Sequence record: MG592456.1
Length of the DNA stretch: 64,000 bases
Reading direction: 5' to 3' (one strand)
Below the pieces are notes generated by a model, which worked only from the letters and a program-made list of their open reading frames with translations, was not told the DNA's origin and did not search any database. Below, piece by piece: positions 15,823 through 37,671 of this stretch; position 1 is the stretch's first letter, and every line of letters starts with the position of its first letter. The position numbers and the translations under genes are program-made.

Positions 15823-18381
15823 ATGGCAATTTATACATCAGTCGAACGAATTGGGTCTAAACTTTGTGAGCGCTATGTCGATGACGACGGCAAAGAGCAT
15901 ATGAGGAAAGTCCCATATACGCCGACACTATTCATGCACTGCAACGAAGAAACAGGTTATACCGACATTTACGGGCGCAACTGTCGACCGAAGTTATTTG
16001 ATACGATGGGCGACGCAAGTCTTTATATGAAAGAAACGAAGCAATATCATGACGTACTTGGCATGGATGACTTCGTTGTATCGTATATCTCAGATGTTTA
16101 TAAAGATCGCAACTTCGATATGAAACAAATTCGCATCGCTAATATCGATATCGAGACGCCTTCTGTTGAATTCCCCGAAGCGAAAGACGCTCCTGTTCCA
16201 ATCACTTCGATTGGTCATTATGACAACATCGACGACATATTTTACGTGTATGGGATTCCGAGTAACTGTGAATGGTCACGCACTGCATCAAACGTCAAGC
16301 CTGAGTTGCTTGAAAAGACGGTGTACATTCGATGTGAAACCGAAAAAGAACTGTTGATCAAGTATCTGCAATTCTGGCGTGAGAAAACTCCTGCAATCGT
16401 TACTGGGTGGAACATTGAATCGTTCGATATGCCATACATTGTCAATCGATACAAGAACCTATTCGGTGAAAAGGTGATGAACAGCTTATCTCCTTGGGGT
16501 AAAGTTCATATTTCAAACACAGTGAACGACTACGGTCAAGAAATCTGTAAAGTCAACATCGTTGGCGTGTCGGAGCTTGATTACATTCAGTTGTATAAGA
16601 AATTCACTTACATCACTCGCCCATCATATCGCTTAGATTACATTGGTGAAGTTGAACTAGGTGAAAATAAAGTTGAATTCTCTCAGGCGAACTATCTTGA
16701 TTTTTACAATGAAGATTATCAGACCTTTATTGATTACCAGATTCAAGACGTGAATCTAGTCAAACGACTGGACGAAAAGCTTCAATTGCTGATGCTGACT
16801 GTTACAATGGCGTATTACGCTGGGATTAACTATCAGACCGTTCTTGGGACAATCAAGCCGTGGGATGCCATCATCTTCAACTCTCTGAAGTTGCAGAAAA
16901 AGGTAGTTCCTATGATGCAGTCTCATGAAGGTGGTCGATTCATGGGTGCGTTTGTTAAAGCACCGCAGGTTGGATATCACCGTGGTATTGGCTCTTTCGA
17001 TTTTACGTCACTATACCCAAAAATCATTGGCGAATGTAACATTTCTCCTGAGACTATCGTGGATCAACTCGATTACAACGGTACATTAGAAGATAGAATT
17101 GACAAAATTGTCGATTATGCTGTATCATTTGAAGCAGATGAGTTGTCCAACAGTGCTAACGGCATGCAATATCGCAAAGACGCACTTGGTGTGATTCCCA
17201 TTGAAATTGACAAAGTATTCAATCAGCGTAAAGCGAACAAGAAGAAGTCATTCGAATACAAGAAACAAGCACTTGATCTCCAACATGCGATTGAGCGTGG
17301 TGAGCGTGAAGATGATGGCGCAGCACAAGCTGAGTTCGACGAGCTGATGCATCAATCAAAAGTATACGATGTTCAGCAAATGGCAAGAAAAATTTTAATT
17401 AACTCATTGTATGGTGCGTTGGGTAATCAGTACTTTAGATTCTATGATTTGCGTAATGCCGAAGCTGTTACAGCTTACGGTCAGCTTGCAATCAAATGGG
17501 TTGCTCGTGATGTAAATATCTGGCTGAACAAGGCATGCAAATCGACTGACGTTGACTACGTGATTTATGGCGATACCGATTCGATTTACGTGAATTTCGA
17601 CCCGTTACTTGAAAAACTTGGTATTAACAAGCTAGAAGGTGACAAATATACTGATAATTTCAGTAAAGTGTGTGAGACTGTTGAAGCGAAAGTGATCAAC
17701 CCGTCTTGTATCTCTCTGCATGAGTATATGAACACGTATCAGCGTGGTATGTTCATGGATCGTGAAGTTCTAGCACGTACTGGGTTCTTCTTAGCTAAGA
17801 AGCGTTACGCGCTCGACGTGCAAGATAACGAAGGCATTCGTGAGGGTAAGCTTAAAATCATGGGAATTGAAACCCAGCGTTCAAGTACCCCGCCACTTGC
17901 TCAAAAAGGGTTGAAAGAATCCATTCGATTGATTCTTCAGAAGGGTCAAGATGAACTTCAGACATACGTGAAAGGGTATGAGACCGAGTTCAAGCGTGCT
18001 CCATATCAAGAAATTTCATTCGTTTCGAGTGCTAATAACTTGAAGAAGTACTCTGATGCTAAGGGAAATCCCGGTAAAGGTTGTCCCGGGCACGTTAAAG
18101 GCGCGTTGTATTACAACAAACTTGCTGAACAGCACGGATTTGACAAGATCAACGAAGGTGATAAAATAGCGGTTGTGTTCTTGACTCGAAACAAGCATGA
18201 TATTGATCGCATTGCATACCCGAGTGGTGGCAAATTGCCTGATTCAATTTCATATTTGCTTGAGCACATCGATTACAATCGCTTGTACGATGAGAAGTTC
18301 ATCAAGCCACTATCGGGAATCTCAGACGCTATTAAGTGGGATTATAAGAAAACATTTACACTGGAGAGTTTCTTCGGTTAA
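15823..18381 (+). CDS. 43: Family B DNA polymerase gp43
   Basis: DIET exonuclease, [28 protein letters not shown]; C-terminus TLESFFG. Confidence 0.98.
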
Positions 18382-18387
18382 TTTAAA

Positions 18388-18414
18388 GAGCGGCAGAATC
18401 TGTCGCTCATTTTT
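18388..18414 (+). terminator. Intrinsic terminator
   Basis: GAGCGGCAG-AAT-CTGTCGCTC then ATTTTT. Confidence 0.7.
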
Positions 18415-18426
18415 GAGGAATACATC

Positions 18427-19581
18427 ATGTTGAACAAAGAAACAATCGAATTGTACTCGAACTTGATGGCATTGACTGCATCAGCGGAAGGTAAGTTCTA
18501 TTTCAACGACCACGTATCGCCGCAGGGTGAGACGTTCCGAGTGTTTGCATATCACATTGCATCATACTCAGATTGGTTGATCCCTGACGCGCTTGAAGCT
18601 CGTGGTATCATGTTCTTAATTGAGCCGGATGGTACATTGCTGGATATTGTGTCACGCCCAATGGAAAAATTCTTCAATCTGGGTGAAAATCCATTCACGA
18701 TGGGTCTGGATTTGACGAAAACTGTATCTTTAATGGATAAAGCTGATGGTTCGCTGATCAGCACGTACTTGACAGGTGACGTATTTGCGCTGAAGTCAAA
18801 GACCTCAATCTATTCAGAGCAAGCAGTTGCAGCAAATCGATACATTAAATTACGTGAACATCGTGATCTATGGGAATTCTGTGATGATTGTTCACAAGCA
18901 AAGTGGACAGTGAACATGGAATGGTGCTCACCTCTGAATCGCATTGTTCTTGAGTACACCGAGCCAAAGCTAATCATCTTGAATATTCGCCACAATATCA
19001 CCGGTGAGTACATGGATCTAGCCGACATCCCATCAGGGACGTTTTCGCGAGTTGCGAAGTATTTCGTCGATGAATTCGACCCGACTGTTGCACATGCTGA
19101 TGACTTTGTCGATGTATTGCGCGAAAAGAAAGGTATCGAAGGCATGATCGGTCGCTTGGAGAATGGTCTTTCTTACAAGATCAAGACTCAGTGGTATGTT
19201 GATTTGCATTGCCAGAAAGATTCTGTGAATGTTCCGAAGAAGTTGGTAACGACTATCTTGAACAACAATCACGATGACCTCTATGCATTGTTTGCAGATG
19301 ACAAGCCAACGATTACGCGCATTCAAGAGTTCGATTCGCATATCTCTGAGAGTTTGCGTGTTGCTCTACAAGACGTTGTTACGTATTACCGTGATAATCG
19401 TCATAAGAGCCGTAAAGACTTCGCTATCGACGGTCAGAAAGCGCTAGACCCATGGTTATTTGGTTCAGTTATGATTGCATATCAAAATCAGTCAACATCC
19501 GGTGTGTTTGAGAACCTGAAAACGATGTTTTTGAAGAAGCCAGAGTTATTAATCCCTGAAAAATATTTAAACGAGGTGTAA
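18427..19581 (+). CDS. rnlA: RNA ligase 1
   Basis: RPMEKFFNLGEN, KADGSLI, GIEG, KIKT.WY. Confidence 0.93.
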   Translation: MLNKETIELYSNLMALTASAEGKFYFNDHVSPQGETFRVFAYHIASYSDWLIPDALEARGIMFLIEPDGTLLDIVSRPMEKFFNLGENPFTMGLDLTKTVSLMDKADGSLISTYLTGDVFALKSKTSIYSEQAVAANRYIKLREHRDLWEFCDDCSQAKWTVNMEWCSPLNRIVLEYTEPKLIILNIRHNITGEYMDLADIPSGTFSRVAKYFVDEFDPTVAHADDFVDVLREKKGIEGMIGRLENGLSYKIKTQWYVDLHCQKDSVNVPKKLVTTILNNNHDDLYALFADDKPTITRIQEFDSHISESLRVALQDVVTYYRDNRHKSRKDFAIDGQKALDPWLFGSVMIAYQNQSTSGVFENLKTMFLKKPELLIPEKYLNEV

Positions 19582-19583
19582 TA

Positions 19584-19835
19584 ATGCAGGTTAATCAAGG
19601 CCAGCCAATGATGGACCCGAATCTATTTGTCACTAAGTTCAATGATGAATTCTTACCGAAACTGCAAGCTGCACTAGCTGCTGACTCGCGTGGGGGTCAA
19701 ATCACGTATGTTGGTAATAGTCGTTGTCCATCAGTGCAAGGTATAGACGTCGACATTGAAGACAAGAACGGAATAACGTCGTCATTTTACTTAGATCCAT
19801 TCACGTGGACGTTCTCCGCAGTGTTTAATCGCTGA
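19584..19835 (+). CDS. Hypothetical protein
   Basis: GAGG RBS, in operon. Confidence 0.65.
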   Translation: MQVNQGQPMMDPNLFVTKFNDEFLPKLQAALAADSRGGQITYVGNSRCPSVQGIDVDIEDKNGITSSFYLDPFTWTFSAVFNR

Positions 19836-19868
19836 TAAATACCCCTGTAGTCAAATACAGGGGTATTT
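19834..19868 (+). promoter_or_regulatory. Late promoter (GATAAATA) in the 5' arm of a 13-bp RBS-sequestering hairpin
   Basis: AAATACCCCTGTA 19837-49 / TACAGGGGTATTT 19856-68. Confidence 0.7.
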
Positions 19869-19870
19869 TT

Positions 19871-20254
19871 ATGTTTGCACAATACAAATTATATTTTATA
19901 GCTGCGTCTGTGGCTATTGCACTTGGTACAATCGGGTACCTAAAGTTCAAAAACATGAATCTTGAAACGACGATTCTTGAACAGACACACACCATTCAGC
20001 GTCTCACTGACAGAACGCATGAATTAGAGGCGGTTATTGTTAGTAAAGACACCACCATTGATTCTTGGAAGACAGTTTACGTCGAGCAAGAGAAGTTCAG
20101 AAAAGACCTGCAATTTGAACTCGACAAGAAAACGGCATTGATTGAGGGCTATAAAGGTCGTCAACACATAGTGTTTGCCAAACCGACGTTAGTCGAGCGC
20201 ATGGAACAAACTGCACTTAATAAGTTTTTCGAGGAGGTGCGTGATGCGAAATAA
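19871..20254 (+). CDS. pseT.3: Inner-membrane spanin (pseT.3-like)
   Basis: N-terminal TM plus coiled coil; overlaps lipoprotein gene; between rnlA and pseT. Confidence 0.8.
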   Translation: MFAQYKLYFIAASVAIALGTIGYLKFKNMNLETTILEQTHTIQRLTDRTHELEAVIVSKDTTIDSWKTVYVEQEKFRKDLQFELDKKTALIEGYKGRQHIVFAKPTLVERMEQTALNKFFEEVRDAK

Positions 20255-20597
20255 AGCCATTTTAGCCATACTAATGTGTTTTACACTATCGTCGTGTGCG
20301 CTATTCGCCAAGCCAGAGCCGGAGATTGTCTATGTGGAAAAGAAGGTCAGTCTAGCTCATCCATCTATGCCAACCCCGCCTGATGATCCGGGTGTGAAAA
20401 TTCGTGTCATCACAACTGATACCATCAAACAAGACCGAGCTTATGTTGGGTTTGAGTATGATGTGTGGCTGGAGTTTGCACAGTGGATGCATACGTATAA
20501 GGCACACCAATCGGATTTGCTGGAAGTCATCAGGTTGTACAAAGAACAAGATGAGACTTTATATCCGGTTGTCGAAAAAGAAATCGAAAAAAACTAA
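20244..20597 (+). CDS. pseT.2: Outer-membrane spanin lipoprotein (pseT.2-like)
   Basis: Lipobox LSSC, Pro-rich segment, GAGGAGG RBS. Confidence 0.8.
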   Translation: MRNKAILAILMCFTLSSCALFAKPEPEIVYVEKKVSLAHPSMPTPPDDPGVKIRVITTDTIKQDRAYVGFEYDVWLEFAQWMHTYKAHQSDLLEVIRLYKEQDETLYPVVEKEIEKN

Positions 20598-20599
20598 AA

Positions 20600-20634
20600 A
20601 AAGGGTTGCTTATGGCAGCCCTTTTCTATATCAT
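20600..20634 (+). terminator. Terminator overlapping a sigma70 promoter
   Basis: AAGGGTTGC-TTATG-GCAGCCCTT; TTGCTT-17-TATCAT; TATCGAAAC leader. Confidence 0.75.
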
Positions 20635-20674
20635 TCTCTTATCGAAACAAAACACAGACGAAAGAGAGAACATT

Positions 20675-20995
20675 ATGACTATTCAATTCAAACGCATTAA
20701 CCTATGTCCTGATTCAAAATACCCACTTTATTCTTACGACGCTGTCGATGAATTTGAATCTGAGGATGTAATCAAGCAGTGCGACGATTTCAACTTCGTA
20801 AGTTGTATTGTTGCAGATGCTCGTTCTTTGCGAATTTGCAAAGAAGCGGACGGTAAAACGTGGATGCTTCGGGCTAGCAATTCTTATAACCCGAGCGAAT
20901 GGTTCATGTTAAACAAAGTTCAAGGTAATTTCAAGACAAAGAAAGAAGCGATTGAATATGCAAATCAAATGTTCAGAAACGAACAAACTAACTAA
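20675..20995 (+). CDS. Hypothetical early protein (start re-assigned)
   Basis: GAGAGAACATTATG. Confidence 0.7.
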   Translation: MTIQFKRINLCPDSKYPLYSYDAVDEFESEDVIKQCDDFNFVSCIVADARSLRICKEADGKTWMLRASNSYNPSEWFMLNKVQGNFKTKKEAIEYANQMFRNEQTN

Positions 20996-21006
20996 GTGAG
21001 CAAATA

Positions 21007-21915
21007 ATGAAATTGATCTTAACAGTAGGCGTCCCTGCGTCGGGTAAAACAACATGGGCTGAAGAGTATTGCCGACTGAATCAAAATACAGTCAACATTA
21101 ATCGCGATGATACTCGCCAAGCTCTATTCGGGCCGTTCAAACCCGGTGAATATCTATACAAGAAAGCTGATGAAGCACTTGTCACGAAAGCTAACAAAGA
21201 CAAAGCACTAGTTGCATTGGGTCGTGGTCAAGACGTTATCATTTCTGACACTAACTTGACACCAGATCGTCGTCAAGTATGGGAGAGTATTGCTGAACAG
21301 TACGACGCTGAGTACGAAATGCGTTTATTTCACATCAGTTTTGATGAAGCAAGTCGTCGTGATCAAGCTCGGGAAATGAAAGTCGGCAACAAAGTACTGC
21401 AAAACATGTTCAAAACGTATCATTCTCAGAATCGTGACTTGATTGTCGCTGATTTCAAACTTAAACTTGAAAACACGTGGGTAATTAACGACAAACCTTG
21501 TGTTTTGTCTGATATCGACGGCACAGTAGCAGAAATGCACAAAGGTCAACCGGGTAAGCGTTCTCCGTTTGAATGGTTACGTGTGGGTGAAGATACACCA
21601 CGTCCGAACGTTCTAAACGTGCTACGTTTGCTATCTGAAGAATATCCGATCATCTTCATTAGTGGTCGTGATGGGGTATGCGTACATCAGACTTCAGACT
21701 GGCTTGGTCACTATGCTGAGTATTACGAAACACTAGTGATGCGCGGTGCGGGTGATAGTCGCCCAGATTGGGTAATTAAGCTCGAATTACTACGTGATTT
21801 AGCGCTAGATGGTTGGTCAAAACCAACTATTATGTTCGATGACCGTGATCAAGTCGTCAATACCATGCGTGATGTTGGTATCGAGGTCTTCCAAGTCCAA
21901 CCAGGTAACTTTTAA
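21007..21915 (+). CDS. pseT: Polynucleotide 5'-kinase/3'-phosphatase
   Basis: GVPASGKTT, INRDD, SDIDGT, FDDR. Confidence 0.95.
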   Translation: MKLILTVGVPASGKTTWAEEYCRLNQNTVNINRDDTRQALFGPFKPGEYLYKKADEALVTKANKDKALVALGRGQDVIISDTNLTPDRRQVWESIAEQYDAEYEMRLFHISFDEASRRDQAREMKVGNKVLQNMFKTYHSQNRDLIVADFKLKLENTWVINDKPCVLSDIDGTVAEMHKGQPGKRSPFEWLRVGEDTPRPNVLNVLRLLSEEYPIIFISGRDGVCVHQTSDWLGHYAEYYETLVMRGAGDSRPDWVIKLELLRDLALDGWSKPTIMFDDRDQVVNTMRDVGIEVFQVQPGNF

Positions 21916-21943
21916 ACACTTTTAAACTTTTGAGGGAAATACA

Positions 21944-22585
21944 ATGGAATTAATGACAATTGGTATCATCGCTGGGGCTGTATTCGTAATATTAATCGGC
22001 ATTGCAATCTATCACAGTACAAAACTCCCGAATCAATCTGCCGCTGAAAAAGCGAAAGACCTAGCAGAAGTCAAACAGCGAAAGATTGCTGAAGACGCTA
22101 TTCGTCGTATGCCGACGATTCCGCCAGAGGCGATCCGAACAACTCAGCCGCATAATCGACATGCCGCCCCGCGCACTCGACGTAACAATCGAGATCAGGG
22201 TCACCATGCTAGTCGTACCAATGATATTGACGCGGTCGACGTAATGGTAGCAGGTGTTGTAGTCAATAGCTTGCTTGGTGACGATGAAATCGCAGATGAT
22301 TGGGAGCCAACTGGGTATCGCCAAGACTCAGTTGATGAACGAGTCGAGCCTGTTTGGGAGCCAACTCTATCTGGCGAAACTCCTGTTGCTGACCCTACCC
22401 CAGTTTATGAAGCGCCTGAGCCAACTCGTTCTTCATATCGTGAGCCTGAGCCGACTTACGAAGCGCCTACTTACACGCCAGAGCCGAGTTCAAGTTACAG
22501 CTCTAGTTCTAGTTACAGCTCTAGTTCAGACTACAGCTCAAGCAGTGACTACAGCTCTAGCTCTAGTTCAAGTAGCTGCGATTAA
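21944..22585 (+). CDS. Membrane-anchored protein with Pro/Glu-rich region and Ser-rich tail
   Basis: N-terminal TM; SSSYSSSSSYSSSSDYSSSSDYSSSSSSSSCD. Confidence 0.75.
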   Translation: MELMTIGIIAGAVFVILIGIAIYHSTKLPNQSAAEKAKDLAEVKQRKIAEDAIRRMPTIPPEAIRTTQPHNRHAAPRTRRNNRDQGHHASRTNDIDAVDVMVAGVVVNSLLGDDEIADDWEPTGYRQDSVDERVEPVWEPTLSGETPVADPTPVYEAPEPTRSSYREPEPTYEAPTYTPEPSSSYSSSSSYSSSSDYSSSSDYSSSSSSSSCD

Positions 22586-23100
22586 TGATTACGGCAGAGA
22601 TATACGGCGACTTAGTCGCCACTCTGCGATCAGTAATCGCAGAGCCAAAATGGAACAAGCCATTCTTGATGGCGCAGGGATGCAACTGTTTTATTGCTCA
22701 AGGTAGCGGGATTGCAGGTCAATTGCGCGAATTCCCTGAAGTCTATCAAGCTGACATCGACTATGGGCGCAAGGGTGACGTCACCAAACTTGGTGAATTA
22801 TCAGTTGCATTATTTGCAGATAACACGCCCGGGCATCTAGACGCTGCTGTGTTCAACTTGTATACTCAATTCAGCATGGGAACTAACAAGCAACATGCTG
22901 AATACGCTGCTATCAAGATGGCGGTTGAAGCCATGTGTCGTGATGCTTACGCTGCTCACAATCCGATTTATGTGCCATTAATTGGTGCTGGTCTTGCTGG
23001 GGGTGACTGGGAGCTAATTCGTCAGATTATAGATAAAGCTAGCGGGACGACTGAAATTATCATCGTTCATTTCGATAAAGGTACAATAATCGACTGGTGA
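22585..23100 (+). CDS. tk.4: Macrodomain protein (T4 Tk.4-like)
   Basis: QGCNCF..GSGIAGQL, FNLYTQF, PLIGAGLAGGDW. Confidence 0.88.
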   Translation: MITAEIYGDLVATLRSVIAEPKWNKPFLMAQGCNCFIAQGSGIAGQLREFPEVYQADIDYGRKGDVTKLGELSVALFADNTPGHLDAAVFNLYTQFSMGTNKQHAEYAAIKMAVEAMCRDAYAAHNPIYVPLIGAGLAGGDWELIRQIIDKASGTTEIIIVHFDKGTIIDW

Positions 23101-23104
23101 TTCT

Positions 23105-23242
23105 ATGTTACTTGTTTTATTAATTCTGTTTTTTGCAATAGCGGGGGGTGTGCTCGTATACTATTTCCATATGCACAACTTAAAACAATTCCATCGGAGA
23201 CATAAATATTTGCAAGCGAGGGCAAAAAAGAGACTACCGTAA
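23105..23242 (+). CDS. 45-aa single-TM microprotein (not in ORF track)
   Basis: MLLVLLILFFAIAGGVLVYYFHMHNLKQFHRRHKYLQARAKKRLP; TAATG-coupled to next gene. Confidence 0.55.
   Translation: MLLVLLILFFAIAGGVLVYYFHMHNLKQFHRRHKYLQARAKKRLP
23201..23208 (+). promoter_or_regulatory. Late promoter-like CATAAATA
   Basis: 1 mismatch to consensus. Confidence 0.55.
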
Positions 23243-23472
23243 TGGGATTCAGATTTAATAAAAAGCTAGCAGATGCTGTGGATGAGTGGCGAATCGTTCC
23301 ACGTATCTTAGTTGGCATGTATTGCTATTTGCTTTACTATACCGCGATGTGGTTTATGGCTTTGCCAGACCCATCCGGAACTCAGGCGGCTTTTGTGTCT
23401 ACTATTGTAGGTGCAGCAGCCGCTATTTTCGGTTTATATACAAACGCAGGCAAAAACAAGTCTGGCGAATAG
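23242..23472 (+). CDS. Two-TM membrane protein, holin-like
   Basis: WRIVPRIL..two hydrophobic helices..FGLY, basic tail; late promoter upstream. Confidence 0.5.
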   Translation: MGFRFNKKLADAVDEWRIVPRILVGMYCYLLYYTAMWFMALPDPSGTQAAFVSTIVGAAAAIFGLYTNAGKNKSGE

Positions 23473-23480
23473 GAAGAAAA

Positions 23481-24953: not shown

Positions 24954-24961
24954 ATAAACCG

Positions 24962-25006: not shown

Positions 25007-25024
25007 ATGAACTAAGGAAAACAC

Positions 25025-25923: not shown

Positions 25924-25926
25924 TTG

Positions 25927-27979: not shown

Positions 27980-27988
27980 GGAATCATT

Positions 27989-28378: not shown

Positions 28379-28380
28379 CT

Positions 28381-28611
28381 ATGATTGTATTATCATTATT
28401 TGGGCTTGCGTCATTCCTCATTGGATTTGGAACATCAATAGAAGTCGATGCACGTGACCCCGGGAAACAAACGACATTCCGTGGGCTATGGGAATACGCG
28501 ACGCGAGTGCAACAAATGATGTTAGTAGTCGGGTTCGTTGGGACGATGACCAGCATGTTTGCTTCTCAAATAGAACGACTTTTAAAATCGGATTGGAATC
28601 ATAAAAAATAG
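28381..28611 (+). CDS. Small membrane protein
   Basis: Two hydrophobic segments; GAGGGG RBS. Confidence 0.55.
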   Translation: MIVLSLFGLASFLIGFGTSIEVDARDPGKQTTFRGLWEYATRVQQMMLVVGFVGTMTSMFASQIERLLKSDWNHKK

Positions 28612-28619
28612 GGCTTGCC

Positions 28620-28802
28620 ATGACTGAATATATTCTCAGAGAAAAAATCACCAAAGCTGGGTTTGAGTATGACTACCAACTGAATGAGTATAACGAAACT
28701 CGACATCAGTTAATCAAAGACGGGAAGGTTATTTACGAATCGTATAATGGGTATTGCGTGGAAGCATTCATTGCAGGTATTGCATTTGCAACTAGTAATT
28801 AA
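28620..28802 (+). CDS. Hypothetical protein
   Basis: Short ORF ending at terminator. Confidence 0.55.
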   Translation: MTEYILREKITKAGFEYDYQLNEYNETRHQLIKDGKVIYESYNGYCVEAFIAGIAFATSN

Positions 28803-28823
28803 GCGCCTTTTGGCGCTTAATTA
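28796..28823. terminator. Bidirectional terminator
   Basis: TAATTAAGCGCC-TTTT-GGCGCTTAATTA. Confidence 0.8.
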
Positions 28824-28832
28824 CTCTTTTCA

Positions 28833-30305
28833 TTACTCTTTTCGAATGCGCAAACCGTTGATGTACCCCGTTGTTGAACCAACTTCAGCTTCAATAGTTA
28901 GCAATAGTGTACCAATTTCACCCACAGTGACGCCCGTGAATGTTAATATCTCGGGGATTGCTGGGTCAAGTAGATCAACAGCACATTGTATGTTCCCACT
29001 TTGTGCACCAACCGTGTACTTCCCAACACGGGTAGTTGACGTGCTATAAGCTCGACTGCCCGTCATAGAAACTTCATAACTTGCTGATGGGTCAAGCCCG
29101 TCGACTAACGTCACGTGCGCCATATCAGTCGAACAGTTTTCTTTATTCAGAGCATAGTTAAGTAATGAAATATCACTACTTGAGTGTCCGGCATACCCAT
29201 TTTTTCCACCAAAAAATCCATCATCAATTTCTAATGTCGCACCGGTGACTTTCGTCCCGTTGCGATTATAAAGTTCAATCGGCGTATTAGCAGCGCTAAT
29301 ACTGTTGCGGTGACGCCCCATCCATTTTGAGTGATATGCGCCAGAGTTAAATCGAACAACGACATCTTCAATATATTGTGTTTCTGGAATTGTTTGCTCA
29401 ATTCGATCACATATCAAATCGACAATATCACTACCTGCGACCAATCGCCCGGGGTCCGTCATATGTATGCCATCTAAATTGTATTCAGGGTGTTCGAATG
29501 TCCATTTGTGTAAGTTATATACAGGCTGACCGTCCTCAACCCAATTAGGGGTCAATTCTTGTATAGCGGGCAGCATATGATTGCTATTATACTCTTCCGC
29601 TGGCATTGACGCTGGTGGAATTCGATAACTGATTGGCGATGCTAAAACTTCAAACTGTGCAGCTAGCCCAGCTTGAATAATACCGCGGAAATTTGCCTCC
29701 ATCGAAGCTGCCGCTGTTGGGTACCCTTCAAATGCACTTGTTAGATCATTGCCGTTTGTATGCACAGTCATGAAATTCACACCATCACGTTGTTGTACTT
29801 CAGCGATGTGAGTTGACAAGGTCGACAGTGTAGTTGCTGATTTAGTTCCGCCAACAGCGCGGTCAAAAATCTTCGCATAAACACCTTTAGCAGCGAATAA
29901 ATCTTCAAGATGTTCTTCGTTGTCATATATTCCATGTTGAATTGACGCACCGACAGCTAGTATATTCAATGGTCCCGTTATCTGCATCTTTGGAGAATTA
30001 ACCACAACCTTGATTCGAAAAAATCGACTGTTGTGTGATTCTCGAATAAGCAGAGAATTATCACCGAATTGCGCACTTGACATCACTTCTTTAACCCAGT
30101 CTGGGGCATCTAATGTGATTTCTCGGGGAAGTTGTGATATAGTATGGTATGATTCTTGTATATTTGCGTATTTTTCAGCAATTCGAGTAAATGAAGTTGT
30201 CCTCATTGAATATCGGGGAAATCCCTGTATAATAAACGAATTGAGTACATCAGATGGCATCGTAAAATCAATAATATCCATTTCTTGATTGATAGGAATA
30301 GTCAT
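28833..30305 (-). CDS. Late protein with SGNH/GDSL hydrolase-like domain and C-terminal beta-rich domain
   Basis: ILAVGASIQ (block I variant), AVGG, HTNGND (block III), DGIHM (block V); exact late promoter. Confidence 0.7.
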   Translation of the reverse strand: MTIPINQEMDIIDFTMPSDVLNSFIIQGFPRYSMRTTSFTRIAEKYANIQESYHTISQLPREITLDAPDWVKEVMSSAQFGDNSLLIRESHNSRFFRIKVVVNSPKMQITGPLNILAVGASIQHGIYDNEEHLEDLFAAKGVYAKIFDRAVGGTKSATTLSTLSTHIAEVQQRDGVNFMTVHTNGNDLTSAFEGYPTAAASMEANFRGIIQAGLAAQFEVLASPISYRIPPASMPAEEYNSNHMLPAIQELTPNWVEDGQPVYNLHKWTFEHPEYNLDGIHMTDPGRLVAGSDIVDLICDRIEQTIPETQYIEDVVVRFNSGAYHSKWMGRHRNSISAANTPIELYNRNGTKVTGATLEIDDGFFGGKNGYAGHSSSDISLLNYALNKENCSTDMAHVTLVDGLDPSASYEVSMTGSRAYSTSTTRVGKYTVGAQSGNIQCAVDLLDPAIPEILTFTGVTVGEIGTLLLTIEAEVGSTTGYINGLRIRKE

Positions 30306-30347
30306 GTGTGACCCTCTGTTAATAATTGTATCGAGTTTGATACAAGT

Positions 30348-30355
30348 TATTTATA
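30348..30355 (-). promoter_or_regulatory. T4 late promoter TATAAATA
   Basis: Exact consensus on minus strand; divergent ACTAAATA at 30371-30378 (+). Confidence 0.85.
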
Positions 30356-30378
30356 TGAATAGTAAAAGAGACTAAATA

Positions 30379-30663
30379 ATGGTAGTAAATCTGTCTAATC
30401 ATTCATACGACGTCTACATCGGCCGCGGCTCCTCATACGGAAATCCATACAAAATCGGGGTTGATGGCACAAGATCAGAAGTCATTGAGCTATATCGAAT
30501 ATGGTTACGCCACAAGCTTAATGACCCTGAGTTCATGGAATTGTTTCTCACACTTAGAGGTAAGATTCTCGGGTGTCACTGCAAACCTAAAGCTTGTCAT
30601 GGTGACGTGATTGAAGAGGAGTTGAGTCGATTAGGCAGCCCATTAAACAATTTTATAGGTTAA
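30379..30663 (+). CDS. DUF4326-like protein
   Basis: YDVYIGRGSSYGNPY..G.DGTR, LGCHCKPKACHGDV. Confidence 0.8.
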   Translation: MVVNLSNHSYDVYIGRGSSYGNPYKIGVDGTRSEVIELYRIWLRHKLNDPEFMELFLTLRGKILGCHCKPKACHGDVIEEELSRLGSPLNNFIG

Positions 30664-30665
30664 TT

Positions 30666-31613
30666 ATGAAATTTTCAACATACACTAATGAAACACAGTC
30701 GCTAGACGAAGCGATGGACAGAGCAGCACATTTTGTGTGGGATCAGAGTAGTAATCGATGGTGGCTAGCAAACTTCCGAGTCAGTGGGGTTGAGTATCAT
30801 ACTGTAGTGATTCGCTCTGAATACCAACACGCAAGTGGTTATCAATATGAAAACGCGGAAGTGTCGTTTCAAGTCAGAGACGCTACCGGTACGTGGTCTC
30901 ATAAACTGGTAAAGGGAAACTCCGCTGATGCAATGACAGTACTTGCTACTGTACTCGCAAGCACATTTGATTATATCGATACGAATAAACCAGAACGTGT
31001 TGAGTACACCGCATATCAAGATGCTGACCCAGCCGACGCCAAAAAGCGCTTGAGATTGTATGAGACGATGACGAGGCGTGGTATCAAAGGCACTGATTAT
31101 GAATATACTCGCAATGGAAATAAATTTGTCGTAGTACGTAAAGGCTTCGCGCAGCGTGTTGCTGATGCAGTTGGTAGCAGTATAGAGCCAGTTGGGATGC
31201 GAACGACGGGAAGATCAGGCATATCGATTAACATTGCGCAGGCGAACGCCGCAGCATTTGCGACCGCGTTTGACGCCTTAGATAGCAAGAAATCGGGCCG
31301 TCTGGCGCAAGGTAGAGCCGCAGTTGGTGCGGGTTCATACGGACAACTACAGGCTGAATTACTCACGCCCCGTGGCGAGCGAGTACCAATGACAGACGAG
31401 TTTAGCTGGAAACAGGTATTAGTACATCCAATATGGACGTTTGACGACGACACTCCTGACACGAAAGACCCGTATTATATGGTGGGTGAATTTCAAGGCA
31501 CGTACGTTGTTCTCGATGATGGCCTTTTAAGAGTGTTCAATGATGAGACGTTTTTCATTAGATATATAACTCCCGGGAGTGGTGCTAAACTACGTAATAG
31601 GAACGAGATATGA
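30666..31613 (+). CDS. CTS-bearing paralogous protein
   Basis: MKFSTYTNETQSLDEA; LVKGNSADAMTVLATV...KKRLRLY. Confidence 0.75.
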   Translation: MKFSTYTNETQSLDEAMDRAAHFVWDQSSNRWWLANFRVSGVEYHTVVIRSEYQHASGYQYENAEVSFQVRDATGTWSHKLVKGNSADAMTVLATVLASTFDYIDTNKPERVEYTAYQDADPADAKKRLRLYETMTRRGIKGTDYEYTRNGNKFVVVRKGFAQRVADAVGSSIEPVGMRTTGRSGISINIAQANAAAFATAFDALDSKKSGRLAQGRAAVGAGSYGQLQAELLTPRGERVPMTDEFSWKQVLVHPIWTFDDDTPDTKDPYYMVGEFQGTYVVLDDGLLRVFNDETFFIRYITPGSGAKLRNRNEI

Positions 31614-31909
31614 GACAAGTCATCGAATTGCTCAACAAGACAAAACTATCCTACACTGACATCAGCGCATTTGGTCAGCCTTGCATATACGTACACGCAG
31701 GGGTGGAGACTATTCTGCGTGTAACATACAACGAGGACTGTTTTTCATTTTATGATTATCGAAGTCAGTATCTATACGAAGAACAGTCGGTTGACGATCT
31801 TGAACTACACTTAAAATCAATTGACGTAGGTCTACCGAACGATATCGTTCTAAACCTGAACGGAAATATTGACAGAGACACCATTCCTCATGGGGCATTT
31901 TTAAAATGA
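31610..31909 (+). CDS. Hypothetical protein
   Basis: ATGA overlaps on both sides. Confidence 0.65.
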   Translation: MRQVIELLNKTKLSYTDISAFGQPCIYVHAGVETILRVTYNEDCFSFYDYRSQYLYEEQSVDDLELHLKSIDVGLPNDIVLNLNGNIDRDTIPHGAFLK

Positions 31910-32745
31910 AATTTTCAGAATATCAAGAACTCAATGAAGCATTTGATCGAGCAGCACCTGACTTGGTGATTAAACGCAATAGAAGCAAATTCAGTGTTGA
32001 TGGTCAAGAATACGTGGTTAGTACTTCTATTGGGTTGTCACGTACGGCCATGTCGGTTGCATTTTCGGCTATTGACGAAGACGGAACTCCCAGCTATGAG
32101 CTAGTTAAAGGTGATGCCCGCACAGCCATGACTGTGTTCGCCACCGTGATTAAAGTCGTACAGCATCACATTGAGAAATACGACTTAATTCGCGTACATT
32201 TTTCGGCATATGCTGACGACATTACATCCGACGCGAAGAAACGAAAGCGACTGTACACGTCATTGACCAAACGTTATGCCGAACAAATGGGATGGGAATG
32301 GGAAGAAGTCGGCGGGGATTTCAGCATCAAAGCTCCAGTGGTCAAAGAAGAGCCAGCGGGATATTCTACAAGTTGGGGTACTGAGTCTCTAGATTTGTTC
32401 GAAGTGAATGCAGCAGCGGTGATTAAAGCAGCGAATGATATTAACATGCGATGGGATTTGTATGATGGCGCGGTTTTGGAAATTATCACTGCAAGTGGCA
32501 GAGCCAGATTGTCTACTGGCTCGATTAATAGCGTAGACTCATGGGCAGACGCATTTGCGCCCCTTATATGGGGCCCGGGGGAGTTTGAGGGAGTGGACGA
32601 CATGCAGAGAATTGCAAGAATTGCAGGTAAGATCTGGGTCCAAGGTGATATGGAAGTGACAATCTATAAAAATATCGAGCACTTCGAGCGTGACGCTGAA
32701 AATCCGGTGTCATCTGAGACAAAATTGATATTAGACCTGATGTAA
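31906..32745 (+). CDS. CTS-bearing paralogous protein
   Basis: MKFSEYQELNEA; LVKGDARTAMTVFATV...KKRKRLY. Confidence 0.75.
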   Translation: MKFSEYQELNEAFDRAAPDLVIKRNRSKFSVDGQEYVVSTSIGLSRTAMSVAFSAIDEDGTPSYELVKGDARTAMTVFATVIKVVQHHIEKYDLIRVHFSAYADDITSDAKKRKRLYTSLTKRYAEQMGWEWEEVGGDFSIKAPVVKEEPAGYSTSWGTESLDLFEVNAAAVIKAANDINMRWDLYDGAVLEIITASGRARLSTGSINSVDSWADAFAPLIWGPGEFEGVDDMQRIARIAGKIWVQGDMEVTIYKNIEHFERDAENPVSSETKLILDLM

Positions 32746-32749
32746 AAAC

Positions 32750-32777
32750 AAAAGGTTAGCTTCGGCTAACCTTTTTT
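32750..32777 (+). terminator. Intrinsic terminator (UUCG loop)
   Basis: AAAAGGTTAGC-TTCG-GCTAACCTTTT. Confidence 0.9.
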
Positions 32778-32798
32778 CGGTCTAAAACAAAGAAAAAC

Positions 32799-32827
32799 TT
32801 TACAACAACCCAGAAATCGCCTATTAT
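32799..32827 (+). promoter_or_regulatory. sigma70 early promoter
   Basis: TTTACA-17-TATTAT; TATCGAAAC leader. Confidence 0.75.
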
Positions 32828-32859
32828 AGCTCTATCGAAACAACAGAGAGAGATATCAC

Positions 32860-33165
32860 ATGAACGTAACAGCAACTTTAAAATTAATCGAAACAGATTT
32901 TGTTCGAGCGGCTATGAGCAGAAGAAAGACGCATTGTCTTTACGCGAAAATCATGGGTGACTCACTAGGTCGTTTCGATTCGGGTGACACCATCTTCACA
33001 TCAAACGTCGAACGTGTTGAAGTCATCAACGATGTCGTATACGCAATTACTCATACAGGTAGTGTGTATCAGCTTGAAGGTGTAAATCAAGCAACGGTAG
33101 ACGGGATGTGTGAACGTGCAGCCTTAAATGGTATAACAATCATGCGCATGACATCTACTGTTTAG
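32860..33165 (+). CDS. Hypothetical protein
   Basis: GRFDSGDTIFTS..VYAITHTGSVYQL. Confidence 0.7.
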   Translation: MNVTATLKLIETDFVRAAMSRRKTHCLYAKIMGDSLGRFDSGDTIFTSNVERVEVINDVVYAITHTGSVYQLEGVNQATVDGMCERAALNGITIMRMTSTV

Positions 33166-33218
33166 AAATATTTCAGAAGTAACAATCATTCATCGAATTC
33201 ATTAGAGAGAAAATCATT

Positions 33219-33548
33219 ATGTCGACAACAATCGTTAACGTTACTGCTGCAATCGAACTTACTTCTAAATTTTTAGTTAAAGATGGCCGAATTGAAGGTC
33301 GTTTTTATAATTCACGTCTTGGTCATGAGAATGGCGAAGTCGGCTTAACTCAGCCAATCCAATCATACAAAGTCGTTGATAGTAAAGTATATGCTGAAAC
33401 TACATGTTGTGTATTTCACTTGCGTAATCTATCAGCGAATCAATTAAACGAATTCAATTCAAACAATGTTTTCGTTCACGTTAAGAAAAAAGATCCGAAG
33501 GGTGACGAACTAATTCGCAGTGCGCTATTCGCATCATTCGAAGTTTAG
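33219..33548 (+). CDS. Hypothetical protein, possible paralogue of preceding gene
   Basis: GRFYNSRLGHENGEVGLT..VYAETTCCVFHL. Confidence 0.7.
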   Translation: MSTTIVNVTAAIELTSKFLVKDGRIEGRFYNSRLGHENGEVGLTQPIQSYKVVDSKVYAETTCCVFHLRNLSANQLNEFNSNNVFVHVKKKDPKGDELIRSALFASFEV

Positions 33549-33599
33549 TTTTTATCGAATATAAGTATATCGGATTTTCATCAATTTAAGAGAAATAAC

Positions 33600-34514
33600 A
33601 TGAAAAGTACAATGTTCCTGCAAAATATCAGCGTAATAGACCACGCATATGTCTGCGACGAAGGTAAAATCAACGGCATGAGCTACAACTTGTGTGTTGA
33701 AATCACAGGTGAAGTAGACGAAACCGAGCAAGTCGTCATTGACTTCAGCGGTTGTAAGAAAGCAATCAAAAATTTAGTCGATGAATCAGAGCACGCGATT
33801 GATCACAAACTTGTAATCATCGACGGCTACAGCAAAGCACATCTTGATACAGTCGAAAATCGCGACCGAACTAAGATCACATCACCTGAGTTTATCGCCG
33901 TTGCATCAGTTGAAGACTGGTTCAAAGTTGTCGAAAACATCACTATGTTCGAAGATAAGCATCAAATTCCATCAGATGTGAAGTACATGAACTATCTGAC
34001 GCAATATCTTGAAGATATGCTAGTAGAACAGCTTCGAGCACTGGGATATCCCGTCACTGAAGTGCTTGTAGAGCTGTCAGAGAAGTTTGATCTGCCATCA
34101 TGGGCAAACGCTCACGCTGAGTTTAACTACGCTCACGGGCTGCGTTCAAGCACGTCTTACGGGTGTCAGAACATTGCTCACGGTCATCGTTCGTTTATTG
34201 CGGTAGATGTACACTTAGGTACGAATGGTCGCAAGGTACTGAAGCGCATTGCAGAAGAAATGACCGGGTATTTCGCATGGTCAGAAAACATTCGATCTGA
34301 TGATGGCGCTGTATCGTATACGTCACAGCGTGGCAATTTCCACTTGCAAATACAAGACCCAATCATCATCCCGACTGAAACTACAGTTGAAAATTTAACA
34401 GCATTCATTGCCGACAAATACATGAATGAACTTCAAGACATGGGTGTTGAGCGTCTGTGGGTTTCTGAAGGGTTATCAAAAGGTGCGGTAATCAATATTC
34501 CACTAAGGAAATAA
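33600..34514 (+). CDS. queD: QueD / 6-pyruvoyl-tetrahydropterin synthase-like, tandem T-fold
   Basis: DHA, VIDF..KK..K..DHK; AH..HGH; ETTVENL; adjacent to folE/queC/queF. Confidence 0.8.
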   Translation: MKSTMFLQNISVIDHAYVCDEGKINGMSYNLCVEITGEVDETEQVVIDFSGCKKAIKNLVDESEHAIDHKLVIIDGYSKAHLDTVENRDRTKITSPEFIAVASVEDWFKVVENITMFEDKHQIPSDVKYMNYLTQYLEDMLVEQLRALGYPVTEVLVELSEKFDLPSWANAHAEFNYAHGLRSSTSYGCQNIAHGHRSFIAVDVHLGTNGRKVLKRIAEEMTGYFAWSENIRSDDGAVSYTSQRGNFHLQIQDPIIIPTETTVENLTAFIADKYMNELQDMGVERLWVSEGLSKGAVINIPLRK

Positions 34515-34515
34515 T

Positions 34516-35205
34516 ATGACTGTGATTTACATAGACGAAGTTCTTGGTGGGTTTGACATTGGGTACACGAAAGGTACGCACAGCGGCAAATGTACGTCAT
34601 TCACATGTGGCGAGTGGGGTACAGATTTCCCATTCATCACTGATGAACATCAATTTCGTCAGCAATTGAATGCGTCTATGTTATCACATGATAGTTCTAT
34701 CTATATTACCGGTAAAGAAACATATGTGTGTGATGATACGTTCGACAACGTTGTTGCGATAGTCAAAAAGACACTAAACGACACAAATTACAGGTTGCAA
34801 TGTGAATGTGTCATTGATGGTGCTGAGTTGAAACGACGCACTGAAGCCGCGAAACACCCGATTAAGGTGTTGACTACAGTCAAGGGTGAAGTCAAAAAGG
34901 TTTGGCCTTACCTGACTGCTGACGGTCGATGTGCAATGCGTAATATGAATCAGTATCATACTAGTGGCGGGTTCTTGGGCATACCTCAGACAATGCAGCC
35001 AAATCACCCATCTGAAGTAACTCAAGATTTAAAAATGTTCGATGGTGATGTCTATAAAGAAGGCACGGCTAATTATCTAAATCGCCCACAATCGAGCTTA
35101 TTCGTTCTACCTACGATAGAACTCCCTGATGCAGAAGTCATCAACATGTTGCAGGGGAACATTAGCAATCCAAACGATACAGGATTGCTTGCCTTTTTCG
35201 GGTAA
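34516..35205 (+). CDS. Unknown protein in deazaguanine locus; C-terminus LLAFFG
   Basis: AAGGA RBS; coupled to queD. Confidence 0.75.
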   Translation: MTVIYIDEVLGGFDIGYTKGTHSGKCTSFTCGEWGTDFPFITDEHQFRQQLNASMLSHDSSIYITGKETYVCDDTFDNVVAIVKKTLNDTNYRLQCECVIDGAELKRRTEAAKHPIKVLTTVKGEVKKVWPYLTADGRCAMRNMNQYHTSGGFLGIPQTMQPNHPSEVTQDLKMFDGDVYKEGTANYLNRPQSSLFVLPTIELPDAEVINMLQGNISNPNDTGLLAFFG

Positions 35206-35221
35206 CAATCTGAATAACAAG

Positions 35222-35250
35222 TTTAATAGCACGCGGTTGCGTGCTATTAT
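35222..35250 (+). promoter_or_regulatory. GTTTA-class promoter with 10-bp inverted repeat
   Basis: (G)TTTAAT-17-TATTAT; AATAGCACGC/GCGTGCTATT. Confidence 0.7.
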
Positions 35251-35276
35251 TGTTTCTAGTCAATGAGGAAAATTAA

Positions 35277-35951
35277 ATGTTAGACACGAAAAAAACCGAC
35301 GCTGTATTAGGCGCTCAAGTAGAAGCACATTTACAATCAATCGGCATGAATACGCCGATGATGGAACACAACATACACACCGATGCAAGTAAAAAGCGCA
35401 TCTTAGAAGTGAAGTTTGCAGAAATCATGGAAACTCTTGGTCTTGACCTTGACGATGACTCGCTAGCAGACACACCACGTCGTTGGGCTAAGATGATGGT
35501 TGAAGACTTAATGTCGGGCTTATCGCCAGATATGTTCCCGAAGTGTACGACTGTTGATAATAAAATGAATTATGATCAAGTAGTTTGTGAAAAAGGCATT
35601 TCGGTCATGTCACAATGTGAGCATCACATTCAAACTATCGACGGCTTTGCGACTGTTGCTTACATTCCTAAAAATAAAGTGCTCGGGTTATCTAAAATGA
35701 ATCGCATCGTTGAGTATTTTTCTCGTCGACCGCAGATTCAAGAACGATTAACGGTTCAAATCGCTGAAACGCTCAAGTTTATTCTTGATACTGAAGACGT
35801 TGCGGTTATGCTAGATTGCAAACATTATTGCGTGAAAGCACGTGGTGTTGAAGACTCGGGATCAACGACGGTTACAAGTCATCTATCTGGTGCCTTCCGA
35901 AACGAATCAAGTTGCCGAGCTGAGTTCATGGGTCTGGCGGCACGTTCATAA
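35277..35951 (+). CDS. folE: GTP cyclohydrolase I
   Basis: SQCEHH, LGLSKMNRIV, RPQIQERLT, CVKARGV. Confidence 0.97.
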   Translation: MLDTKKTDAVLGAQVEAHLQSIGMNTPMMEHNIHTDASKKRILEVKFAEIMETLGLDLDDDSLADTPRRWAKMMVEDLMSGLSPDMFPKCTTVDNKMNYDQVVCEKGISVMSQCEHHIQTIDGFATVAYIPKNKVLGLSKMNRIVEYFSRRPQIQERLTVQIAETLKFILDTEDVAVMLDCKHYCVKARGVEDSGSTTVTSHLSGAFRNESSCRAEFMGLAARS

Positions 35952-36118
35952 TGAAGAACGAGCAATGTTGCAGCAGAAATTGTGACAACACGGTAGACGT
36001 CCCTGATGATTTTGAATTTCAGGGATGTTGCTCTGGGTTTGAATGTGGGTGTATGGGAATGATGATCAATCCCGTATTCTGTGATGAATGTATTAAACAA
36101 TACGAAGGAACCGCATGA
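35951..36118 (+). CDS. 55-aa Cys-rich microprotein (9 Cys; not in ORF track)
   Basis: MKNEQCCSRNCDNTVDVPDDFEFQGCCSGFECGCMGMMINPVFCDECIKQYEGTA; TAATG and ATGA overlaps. Confidence 0.75.
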   Translation: MKNEQCCSRNCDNTVDVPDDFEFQGCCSGFECGCMGMMINPVFCDECIKQYEGTA

Positions 36119-37671
36119 TTATTGAATATGTTATGTCTGCTACGGGTCATGCTCGTATTGGCGCGGCACACAAGCTAATGAACGTAGTAGATACCAAGTA
36201 TCTTAGAGACGTTCTAGACGCAGCGCAAGACATGGACGGCGTTCACAAGATCAGTATGCTTTATAACGCCTACACTGAGAAAAAGGTTGGTATTCAAATC
36301 AACGAATTGTTCGGTGATAGCGTATATAAAGTTCATGTTGACTCGGGTGGACTGCAAATCGTCAACTTAGGTTTAGAGAACACACCAGAGTTACGTCAGG
36401 CTGTCTACGAAAATCAGGCAGCGTCTGGTGACATTGGGATGTGTTTCGACGAAATCCCGCTTCATAATGAAGCAAAGGGTGGTGGTTCAGCTCGTATCAA
36501 CACCAAAGATAAAGTGTTCATGTACGATCTCGCGTTCGAGTACGGACGTAAGACGGGTCAGAACATTCGCGCTCAAATCGAAACATACATCGCGACTAAG
36601 AGTGAGTGCAAACCGTATATCATTTTGCAAGGCAACTCTGATGACGATTTCATTGCATTCAGTGATGGGATTATGTCTGAACTCAATGGGTTAGAAGACT
36701 ATATTGCGGGTTGTGCTGCTGCCGATACATGTATTGGGAATGGTGTTCGCGAATCTATTGACATGATGTCAGTAATTCGCAAGCTGAACATACCAGAAAA
36801 GGCAAAGAAATCAGTGCATTTACTGGGTGTTGGGTCAGTTAAACGTCTCTTGCCGGCTGTTGCGCTCGTGCGTAGTGGTTATTTTGGTGAAGATTTCCAT
36901 ATGAGCTATGATTCGTCAACTCATACGGGTTGTTTAACCAATCGCGAATACACTGATAAGCTAGGTCGCCGTAAGAAGATTTCAGGTCATGGTATTATGC
37001 GCAATGGCATTAAACAGCCATCGCGTGAATTAGATGAAATGCTCGACGAAGTATGGGGACGATTTGGTCACGTATTGCCACGTTCTAAGGTTGAGTTCAA
37101 AGAGTTCGCAACTCGATTGTGGTTGAAGGACTTAGACAAAGAAACGATGACTGATGACGATATTGTGTTTGAAGTTGCGTGTAACTTGTGTATAATCTTA
37201 TCTCAAGTCAACAACTTCCAATCGATTATCTCTGAAACATTCGATTTGAACACCCCAAAGGCAGTTGATTTATCAGCATTCTTTGGAAACGCGGTTGAAG
37301 CTAAAGAATCCCAAGAAGGGTTCAAGAAATGGTCAGCGATTCGTCGTCTTGATGTTCTTGACAAGCTGCTTGATATTGACACAGTTGAAGGTTACAATCG
37401 CTGGCATACGAGTTATGTTGATCGACTACCGTCAATGCGTATTCGTCGCGGCTTAACAACCGATTTCCCTGCGTTTAAAGTCGCAGAGAAAGACGTTGTT
37501 GAAGACGTTGTTGAAGACGTTGTTGAAGACGTTGTTGAAGACGTTGACGCTATCAAATATAAGCTCAAGTTGAAAATACTAGAGTTTAAGCAACTGCATG
37601 GTAGTAACATGGTAGAAAAGAAAGCTACTGTATTAGCCGAAATCAATGAGCTGAAAGCAAAATTAGGGTAA
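36115..37671 (+). CDS. dpdA: TGT-fold 7-deazaguanine DNA transglycosylase (DpdA-like)
   Basis: VDSGG, MCFDEIP, ILQG, HLLGVG, SYDSS in TGT order; locus context. Confidence 0.75.
   Translation: MIIEYVMSATGHARIGAAHKLMNVVDTKYLRDVLDAAQDMDGVHKISMLYNAYTEKKVGIQINELFGDSVYKVHVDSGGLQIVNLGLENTPELRQAVYENQAASGDIGMCFDEIPLHNEAKGGGSARINTKDKVFMYDLAFEYGRKTGQNIRAQIETYIATKSECKPYIILQGNSDDDFIAFSDGIMSELNGLEDYIAGCAAADTCIGNGVRESIDMMSVIRKLNIPEKAKKSVHLLGVGSVKRLLPAVALVRSGYFGEDFHMSYDSSTHTGCLTNREYTDKLGRRKKISGHGIMRNGIKQPSRELDEMLDEVWGRFGHVLPRSKVEFKEFATRLWLKDLDKETMTDDDIVFEVACNLCIILSQVNNFQSIISETFDLNTPKAVDLSAFFGNAVEAKESQEGFKKWSAIRRLDVLDKLLDIDTVEGYNRWHTSYVDRLPSMRIRRGLTTDFPAFKVAEKDVVEDVVEDVVEDVVEDVDAIKYKLKLKILEFKQLHGSNMVEKKATVLAEINELKAKLG
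37490..37546 (+). repeat. In-frame 12-bp tandem repeat (AAGACGTTGTTG x4.75) encoding (DVVE)n
   Basis: Direct reading. Confidence 0.9.

Follow-up and report, generated by a model that had tools for sequence, protein, structure and literature searches.

A window of 64,000 nucleotides (nt) from the genome of Vibrio phage 1.081.O._10N.286.52.C2 (MG592456.1; Straboviridae, Schizotequatrovirus, KVP40-like) was analysed; it is 100% identical to this phage, and the window position equals the record position − 62,000. The window holds a T4-type replication block (gp55, gp45, clamp loader and gp43) as well as a 7-deazaguanine block in the order QueD-like, ORF134, FolE, DpdA, QueF, QueC and a GATase-like gene. 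The DNA-acting enzymes of the 7-deazaguanine system appear to carry the peptide by which the DNA polymerase gp43 docks on the sliding clamp gp45, and the comparison of sequences suggests that these peptides probably tether the enzymes to gp45.

In this phage the peptide is displayed twice, as GLLAFFG at the free C-terminus of ORF134 and as DLSAFFG in a loop of the DpdA2-type transglycosylase. By binding to the hydrophobic pocket of gp45, the peptides would keep DpdA and ORF134 at clamps already loaded on the phage DNA, while this is being replicated or shortly afterwards. gp45 is proposed as a docking platform, a helper and not a cofactor, and the tether may influence how fast or when the enzymes act, or their choice of phage DNA as target. 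The features on which this proposal centres are the following (lengths in amino acids, aa):

12462..13127, + strand: gp45 sliding clamp, 221 aa; Pfam gp45-slide_C (E 3.4e-31) and PHROG 223, DNA polymerase processivity factor (E 4.7e-64)
15823..18381, + strand: gp43 family-B DNA polymerase, 852 aa; PHROG 262 (E 4e-303); tail TLESFFG at nt 18358-18378
34516..35205, + strand: ORF134, 229 aa, between the QueD-like gene and folE; ends GLLAFFG (nt 35182-35202)
36115..37671, + strand: DpdA, DNA guanine transglycosylase of the DpdA2 subfamily, 518 aa; assigned by orthology and by the tRNA-guanine transglycosylase (TGT) fold of its AlphaFold2 model
37252..37305, + strand: inserted flexible loop of DpdA, residues 380-397, with DLSAFFG at residues 386-392 (nt 37270-37290)
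37489..37671, + strand: C-terminal extension of DpdA, residues 459-518; acidic (VVED)4 repeat and behind it a helical hairpin

The polymerase-type peptide in ORF134 and DpdA

The whole phage genome (239,318 bp) was reassembled from the GenBank record, and its 389 open reading frames (ORFs; 75,278 residues) were scanned for the motif. L..FFG was found three times in this proteome, at the C-terminus of gp43, at the C-terminus of ORF134 and inside DpdA. The endings TLESFFG of gp43 and GLLAFFG of ORF134 read as the initial annotation had given them. Its third match, DLSAFFG in DpdA, was also recovered, but in an internal insertion and not in the C-terminal extension where it had been placed. From the residue frequencies, about 0.66 occurrences are expected anywhere in the proteome and 0.0034 at a C-terminus. 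The tail of ORF134 is therefore improbable by chance, while the match in DpdA alone lies within chance and needs other evidence.

ORF134 gave no match in Pfam, PHROG or NCBIfam, and no relative was retrieved from 50,697 phage records by tblastn or from 5.8 billion clustered proteins by a word-based search. The gene is absent from KVP40 and most relatives. A single relative, P0003 (E 1.9e-13), was present among 1.84 billion cluster representatives, with 29% identity over the full-length alignment and 34% over residues 1-145. P0003 occupies the same gene slot on a metagenomic KVP40-like contig and ends with SLSRFFQ. An AlphaFold2 model of ORF134 from a two-sequence alignment was too poor for a fold search (predicted local distance difference test, pLDDT, 42.9), and in this poor model the C-terminal 85 residues, of which GLLAFFG forms the last seven, are disordered. 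The ESM Atlas model (pLDDT 0.33) had weak ASKHA/RNase H-like look-alikes at most.

In phage nt-1 the slot of ORF134 is filled by ArcS2 (VPFG_00169), which matches DUF5591 (E 3.3e-11), makes dG+ in DNA (PMC10516641) and ends with SLANFF. It was considered whether ORF134 is a diverged ArcS2; this was rejected, as ORF134 has no match to DUF5591 or any other Pfam model and BLASTP against nt-1 ArcS2 gave an E of 0.84. The two proteins being mutually dissimilar, the same tail is thus carried independently by proteins of this locus that share no homology. The enzymes of free-base synthesis (QueD-like, FolE, QueF and QueC) never bear the tail, which DpdA and nt-1 ArcS2 do.

Residues 1-458 of DpdA are 84% identical to DpdA2 of VH7D and 59% identical to DpdA2 of nt-1, the two orthologues with experimentally demonstrated activity (PMC10516641), and the protein matches PHROG 10773 (E 3e-224). 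Its AlphaFold2 model, built from a 59-sequence alignment, has the TGT fold with a mean pLDDT of 85.7 and a predicted template modelling score of 0.79. Foldseek matched it to tRNA-guanine transglycosylases and to the bacterial DpdA 7ui4 with probability 1.00 (E ~4e-7). Invariant alignment columns are D76-S-G-G-L-Q81, D112 and D266, which would be compatible with a conserved active site. The gene is flanked by those for preQ0/preQ1 synthesis (QueD-like, FolE, QueF, QueC). Given the presence of QueF and the preference of VH7D DpdA2 for preQ1 (PMC10516641), dPreQ1 is likely the main product in the DNA of this phage, possibly with other 7-deazaguanines.

DLSAFFG sits in an insertion of 15-20 residues that, among the 59 aligned homologues, is limited to Schizotequatrovirus DpdAs. 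In the AlphaFold2 model the loop 380-397 has a pLDDT <50 and lies between helices 347-375 and 401-409 of the helical C-terminal domain. Eight Schizotequatrovirus-type DpdAs share the loop consensus D-L-[S/T]-[A/S]-F-F-[G/D], with D, L, F and F invariant in the eight phages and the x positions and the next eight residues variable. The extension behind it, residues 459-518, is unique to this phage and absent from KVP40, VH7D, F86, D527, ValKK3, D483 and L119. Its VVED repeats are encoded by a perfect 12-nt tandem repeat of 4.8 copies (37490-37546), and AlphaFold2 predicts helices 477-493 and 500-517 as a helical hairpin.

Two kinds of known gp45 clients resemble these proteins. In T4, the tail EKASLDFLFG of gp43 binds gp45 (PMC6212786, PMC2988020), and T4-type gp43, gp33 and gp55 have hydrophobic-acidic C-termini that bind the clamp and can be exchanged for one another (PMC2988020). 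ORF134, most DpdA2 proteins, nt-1 ArcS2 and a glycosyltransferase-like family described below look alike in having such short C-termini on variable flexible linkers; the T4 proteins differ in serving replication and late transcription and not DNA hypermodification. T4 DNA ligase binds gp45 via a flexible loop of its NTase domain, EPEGLDFLFD, and the structure of the peptide-clamp complex has been solved (PMC6212786). As in the ligase, the loop in the window's DpdA is a flexible insertion that resembles the clamp peptide of the polymerase (KAVDLSAFFGNA against TFTLESFFG in gp43). Binding of the ligase to gp45 has been both solved and measured, whereas for the DpdA loop it is predicted. DpdA is moreover an enzyme of base exchange and not of replication, and most DpdA2 peptides are C-terminal and not in a loop.

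DpdA2 tails and cognate polymerase tails in other phages

A profile built from five DpdA2 proteins retrieved 80 viral-contig loci, from which 58 distinct complete DpdA homologues were analysed. Their median pairwise identity is 42% and the minimum 24%. The tail reads [S/T]-L-[E/D]-x-[L/F]-F or, more widely, [S/T/D/N]-L-[E/D]-x-[L/F/M]-F, with 0-2 further residues behind it, and the strict regular expression for it was written after the data had been seen. A gp43-type tail was found at the C-terminus of 45/58 of these homologues from other T4-like phages. In these tails L is invariant and F nearly so, and a variable proline-rich linker precedes them. Among isolated phages, DpdA ends with NSLDDLFG in Moby, TTLDELFE in ACP17, ASLDSFFD in BUCT-ZZ01 and QSLEELFG in BUDD. 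gp45 was encoded by all ten of the other DpdA2-bearing genomes searched (10/10), and on these alignments the DpdA2 proteins of phages with a gp45 gene normally have a gp43-type tail. Conservation across homologues, proposed as a check in the initial annotation, was borne out by the 45 DpdA2 tails, by P0003 and by the DpdA loop of the eight phages.

The tail is confined to few proteins. Just 19 of 1,173 other ORFs of the same loci carry it, namely gp43, a glycosyltransferase-like protein of ~455 aa and one protein of 340 aa. Scans of three complete viral genomes of the T4-like type, with 238, 256 and 214 ORFs, each gave the strict tail in exactly three proteins: gp43, DpdA and a member of the ~455-aa family.

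The genes of the ~455-aa family usually lie directly upstream of dpdA in T4-like or cyanophage-like genomes (L020:8625-9992, L071:8629-9996, L108:1153-2496 and relatives); in one of the three complete genomes the gene does not adjoin dpdA. Their tails read SSLESLFA, NLDAFFG and SLEDFFND. One member matches Pfam Glycos_transf_1, and with the profile of the family weak hits to GT-B enzymes were obtained in the PDB (WlaC, E 2e-4). A member of this family probably acts on DNA, and judging from its sequence the family could be a clamp-tethered DNA glycosyltransferase. No homologue of it was found in the window's phage. The 340-aa protein, without Pfam match, is encoded 644 nt downstream of dpdA on two viral contigs (L032:9710-10732, L035:6782-7804) and ends with PSLEDLFS.

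The client tails also vary with the type of the polymerase tail. Phages with an LF-type gp43 have LF or MF clients (8/8), and FF clients are confined to phages with an FF-type gp43. Examples are:

L071 (G003): gp43 tail GSLDDFF, DpdA tail TDLEDFF
BUDD: gp43 tail SLESLFG, DpdA tail SLEELFG
L020 (G001): gp43 tail ATLEGLFS, DpdA tail MSLEDLFA

For three further phages, the DpdA tail was used to predict whether the polymerase is of FF or LF type before gp43 was fetched, and 3/3 predictions were correct:

BUCT-ZZ01: FF predicted, gp43 tail TLDDFFS found
ACP17: LF predicted, gp43 tail SLDDLFE found
Moby: LF predicted, gp43 tail SLEDLFGW found

Weighing of the proposed clamp tether for DNA modification

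Several points count against a tether. The homologues share common descent, so that the 45 tails among 58 do not count as separate events; evidence that is independent comes from the non-homologous tail carriers, the co-variation with gp43 and the three predictions. In the clade of the window's phage, the DpdAs of Schizotequatrovirus and of nt-1 end with TTAEFPAFKEQE, the ancestral C-terminal tail having been lost, and in the sequence alignment the nt-1 DpdA has no internal motif either. The decayed tail of this clade, ...RRGTTAEFPAFKEQE, aligns with ...SGKPTDLEDFF of other DpdAs, and the motif reappears in the clade three times, in the KVP40-type DpdA loop, at the end of nt-1 ArcS2 and at the end of ORF134. 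Taken alone, the internal DLSAFFG is what chance would provide in a proteome of this size. The DpdA2 enzymes of VH7D and nt-1 insert preQ1 or preQ0 into plasmid DNA of E. coli without gp45 (PMC10516641), so the role of the clamp would be assistance and not necessity. Modification levels are low as well: 7-deazaguanines make up <0.1% of Gs in phages of the DpdA2 subfamily, mdPreQ1 in phi-Grn1 and phi-ST2 0.01% of Gs, and nt-1 has tens to hundreds of 7-deazaguanines per million nucleotides. Such levels are not obviously expected of a processive modifier riding the replisome.

The last point concerns T4 alpha-glucosyltransferase, for which riding on gp45 is an earlier hypothesis (cited as reference 20 in bioRxiv 10.64898/2025.12.06.692756); that 2025 preprint failed to reproduce the interaction, both in vitro and in vivo. 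The likeness is that a phage DNA-modifying enzyme was proposed to ride the sliding clamp and to modify DNA during replication. The present case differs in being based on an explicit, conserved and co-varying motif, and we know of no report of a gp43-like tail for T4 alpha-glucosyltransferase. In eukaryotes, DNMT1 and UNG2 are recruited to PCNA by a PIP-box, so that newly made DNA gets processed; clamp family, motif and chemistry are different there and the comparison is an analogy only.

It is rather improbable that the tail has a different binding partner from gp45, be it another component of the replisome or of nucleotide metabolism, or a contact between DpdA molecules or between DpdA and a partner, the resemblance to the gp43 tail then reflecting a common hydrophobic-acidic type of interaction. 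The DpdA1 proteins of 9g, an unrelated phage, and of its relatives end with ...QDLFDE, QELF and QGFF though the polymerase tail of 9g differs, so an LF tail may be independent of gp45; yet in 9g a gene annotated as clamp adjoins dpdA, and the 9g tail may also be a clamp motif. Against another partner, the DpdA tails of T4-like phages equal and co-vary with the tail of the cognate gp43, whose partner is gp45 (PMC2988020, PMC6212786), and the same tail is found on ORF134, ArcS2 and the glycosyltransferase-like family, which are non-homologous.

A narrower doubt is that the DpdA loop motif of this phage is non-functional or due to chance, with only ORF134 binding the clamp, perhaps in a role unrelated to deazaguanine (a nuclease or a mobile-element gene). 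We regard this as unlikely. One internal L..FFG per proteome is within expectation, nt-1 DpdA is active without the insertion (PMC10516641), and ORF134, which KVP40 and most relatives lack, shows no domain that could be recognised and gave unusable models (pLDDT 0.33 and 42.9). However, the insertion is lineage-specific and forms a disordered loop, in which D, L, F and F stay the same in eight phages amid varying neighbours. It is found in the clade with the decayed ancestral tail, though nt-1 lost the tail without gaining the loop, and the loop of T4 ligase provides a precedent. That the whole pattern is a functionless coincidence or a compositional bias of C-termini is very improbable. Short motifs do recur by chance and the strict expression was post hoc, but the tail was present in 45/58 DpdAs against 19/1,173 other ORFs, nearly all of these 19 being gp43 or one other family. 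Each of the three complete genomes has exactly three tailed proteins, all three forward predictions were correct, and, beside hypervariable linkers, the tail persists among homologues with pairwise identities as low as 24%.

The clamp tether thus remains the favoured explanation. In the initial annotation, base exchange was proposed to be tethered to the clamp and so coupled to replication. The comparative evidence (tails in 45/58 homologues, their confinement, the co-variation, P0003 and the ligase precedent) argues for the tether, and the coupling to replication is narrowed to a clamp-assisted process. The same annotation knew of no description of clamp coupling for DpdA systems, and full-text literature searches pairing DpdA or deazaguanine with the sliding clamp brought up no paper describing it and nothing else relevant. 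The clamp is unmentioned in the main DpdA2 papers. Hutinet 2019 and 2023 treat the insertion as a free post-replicative event, naming no clamp or C-terminal motif (PMC6884629, PMC10516641), and in the literature searched DNA-hypermodification enzymes are not listed as gp45 clients.

If the tether is real, these enzymes would form a new class of clients for the known clamp-peptide tool-belt of gp45. By copying the clamp peptide of the polymerase, they would find freshly replicated phage DNA, and that alone. For DpdA, the peptide would offer a concrete mechanism of substrate finding, in that the enzyme would load onto gp45 remaining on phage DNA that has just been replicated. This could explain the targeting of modification to phage over host DNA and the low levels in clamp-free heterologous assays, and heterologous activity might rise when clamp and clamp loader are co-expressed. 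A gp43-like tail would also be a simple sequence rule for spotting DNA-acting modification enzymes in T4-like phages, such as ORF134 and the ~455-aa family. Tentatively, tethering to a clamp may be a principle that holds generally for DNA hypermodification in phages, extending over DpdA2, ArcS2, the glycosyltransferase-like family, the ORF134 family and perhaps, by way of a clamp of their own, the DpdA1 of 9g-like phages.

Neighbouring genes and other tail-like endings

The remaining features of the window that were considered are:

3287..3802, + strand: gp55 late sigma factor, 171 aa; PHROG 234 (E 6.6e-57); ends LQKFYD (nt 3782-3799)
30379..30663, + strand: DUF4326 protein, 94 aa; Pfam DUF4326; ends SPLNNFIG (nt 30640-30660)
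33600..34514, + strand: QueD-like protein with PTPS domain (Pfam PTPS, E 9.3e-11), without tail
35277..35951, + strand: FolE, GTP cyclohydrolase I (Pfam GTP_cyclohydroI, E 3.8e-58), without tail
37674..38585, + strand: QueF, preQ0 reductase (Pfam QueF_N and QueF), without tail
38639..39355, + strand: QueC (Pfam QueC, E 5.6e-53), without tail
39355-39954: GATase-like protein, downstream of QueC; ends TLNNPYFFM

The cluster of QueD-like, FolE, DpdA, QueF, QueC and GATase genes is the same as in nt-1 and VH7D (PMC6884629, PMC10516641). This phage differs from nt-1 in having ORF134 at the place of ArcS2 and in the unique repeat-and-helical extension of DpdA. QueE is annotated away from the main locus, at record positions 175179-176030 of the same phage and outside the window. 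DpdM (DUF3109, PF11307) was looked for with its Pfam model in VH7D, KVP40, nt-1 and the window's phage, without a match. At record positions 154068-157300 (L008), outside the window and distant from the main deazaguanine locus, the annotation of the record gives a second small cluster, which includes an aldolase-type TIM-barrel protein and a QueC-like protein (COG0603).

The weaker matches of the initial annotation, LNNFIG in the DUF4326 protein and LQKFYD in gp55, are both present as described. Pfam DUF4326 spans residues 4-79, leaving the 15-residue tail of the protein outside the domain. KVP40 and VH7D retain this tail, and the nt-1 version reads PLNSFIG. According to a published prediction (PMC9503650), DUF4326 is an enzyme of the rhodanese-phosphatase type that acts on products of ADP-ribose. 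From its ending the protein is a weaker candidate client of the clamp. The GATase-like protein ends with TLNNPYFFM here, TLENPYFFM in KVP40 and TLENPYFFL in nt-1, that is TLE...FF with two extra residues. This ending is probably part of the fold and not a clamp tail, as the same stretch in pf16 is not C-terminal. gp33 of this phage ends with DLGEWV. A UvsX/RecA-like recombinase outside the window (record 32016-33116, L006) ends with EIDDLFD, a hydrophobic-acidic ending resembling the SLExLF type.

DpdA1 of Enterobacteria phage 9g, an unrelated siphovirus (L156, KJ419279, 3007-3960), ends with RLQDLFDE. Its gene is situated directly upstream of one annotated by the depositors as replicative clamp, followed by the polymerase gene; the clamp annotation was not confirmed in a Pfam scan of that gene. 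The 9g-type DpdA1 ending may be a motif for a different clamp. Relatives of this DpdA1 (L157-L173, down to 40% identity) end with HDLFD, QELF, PGLF or QGFF.

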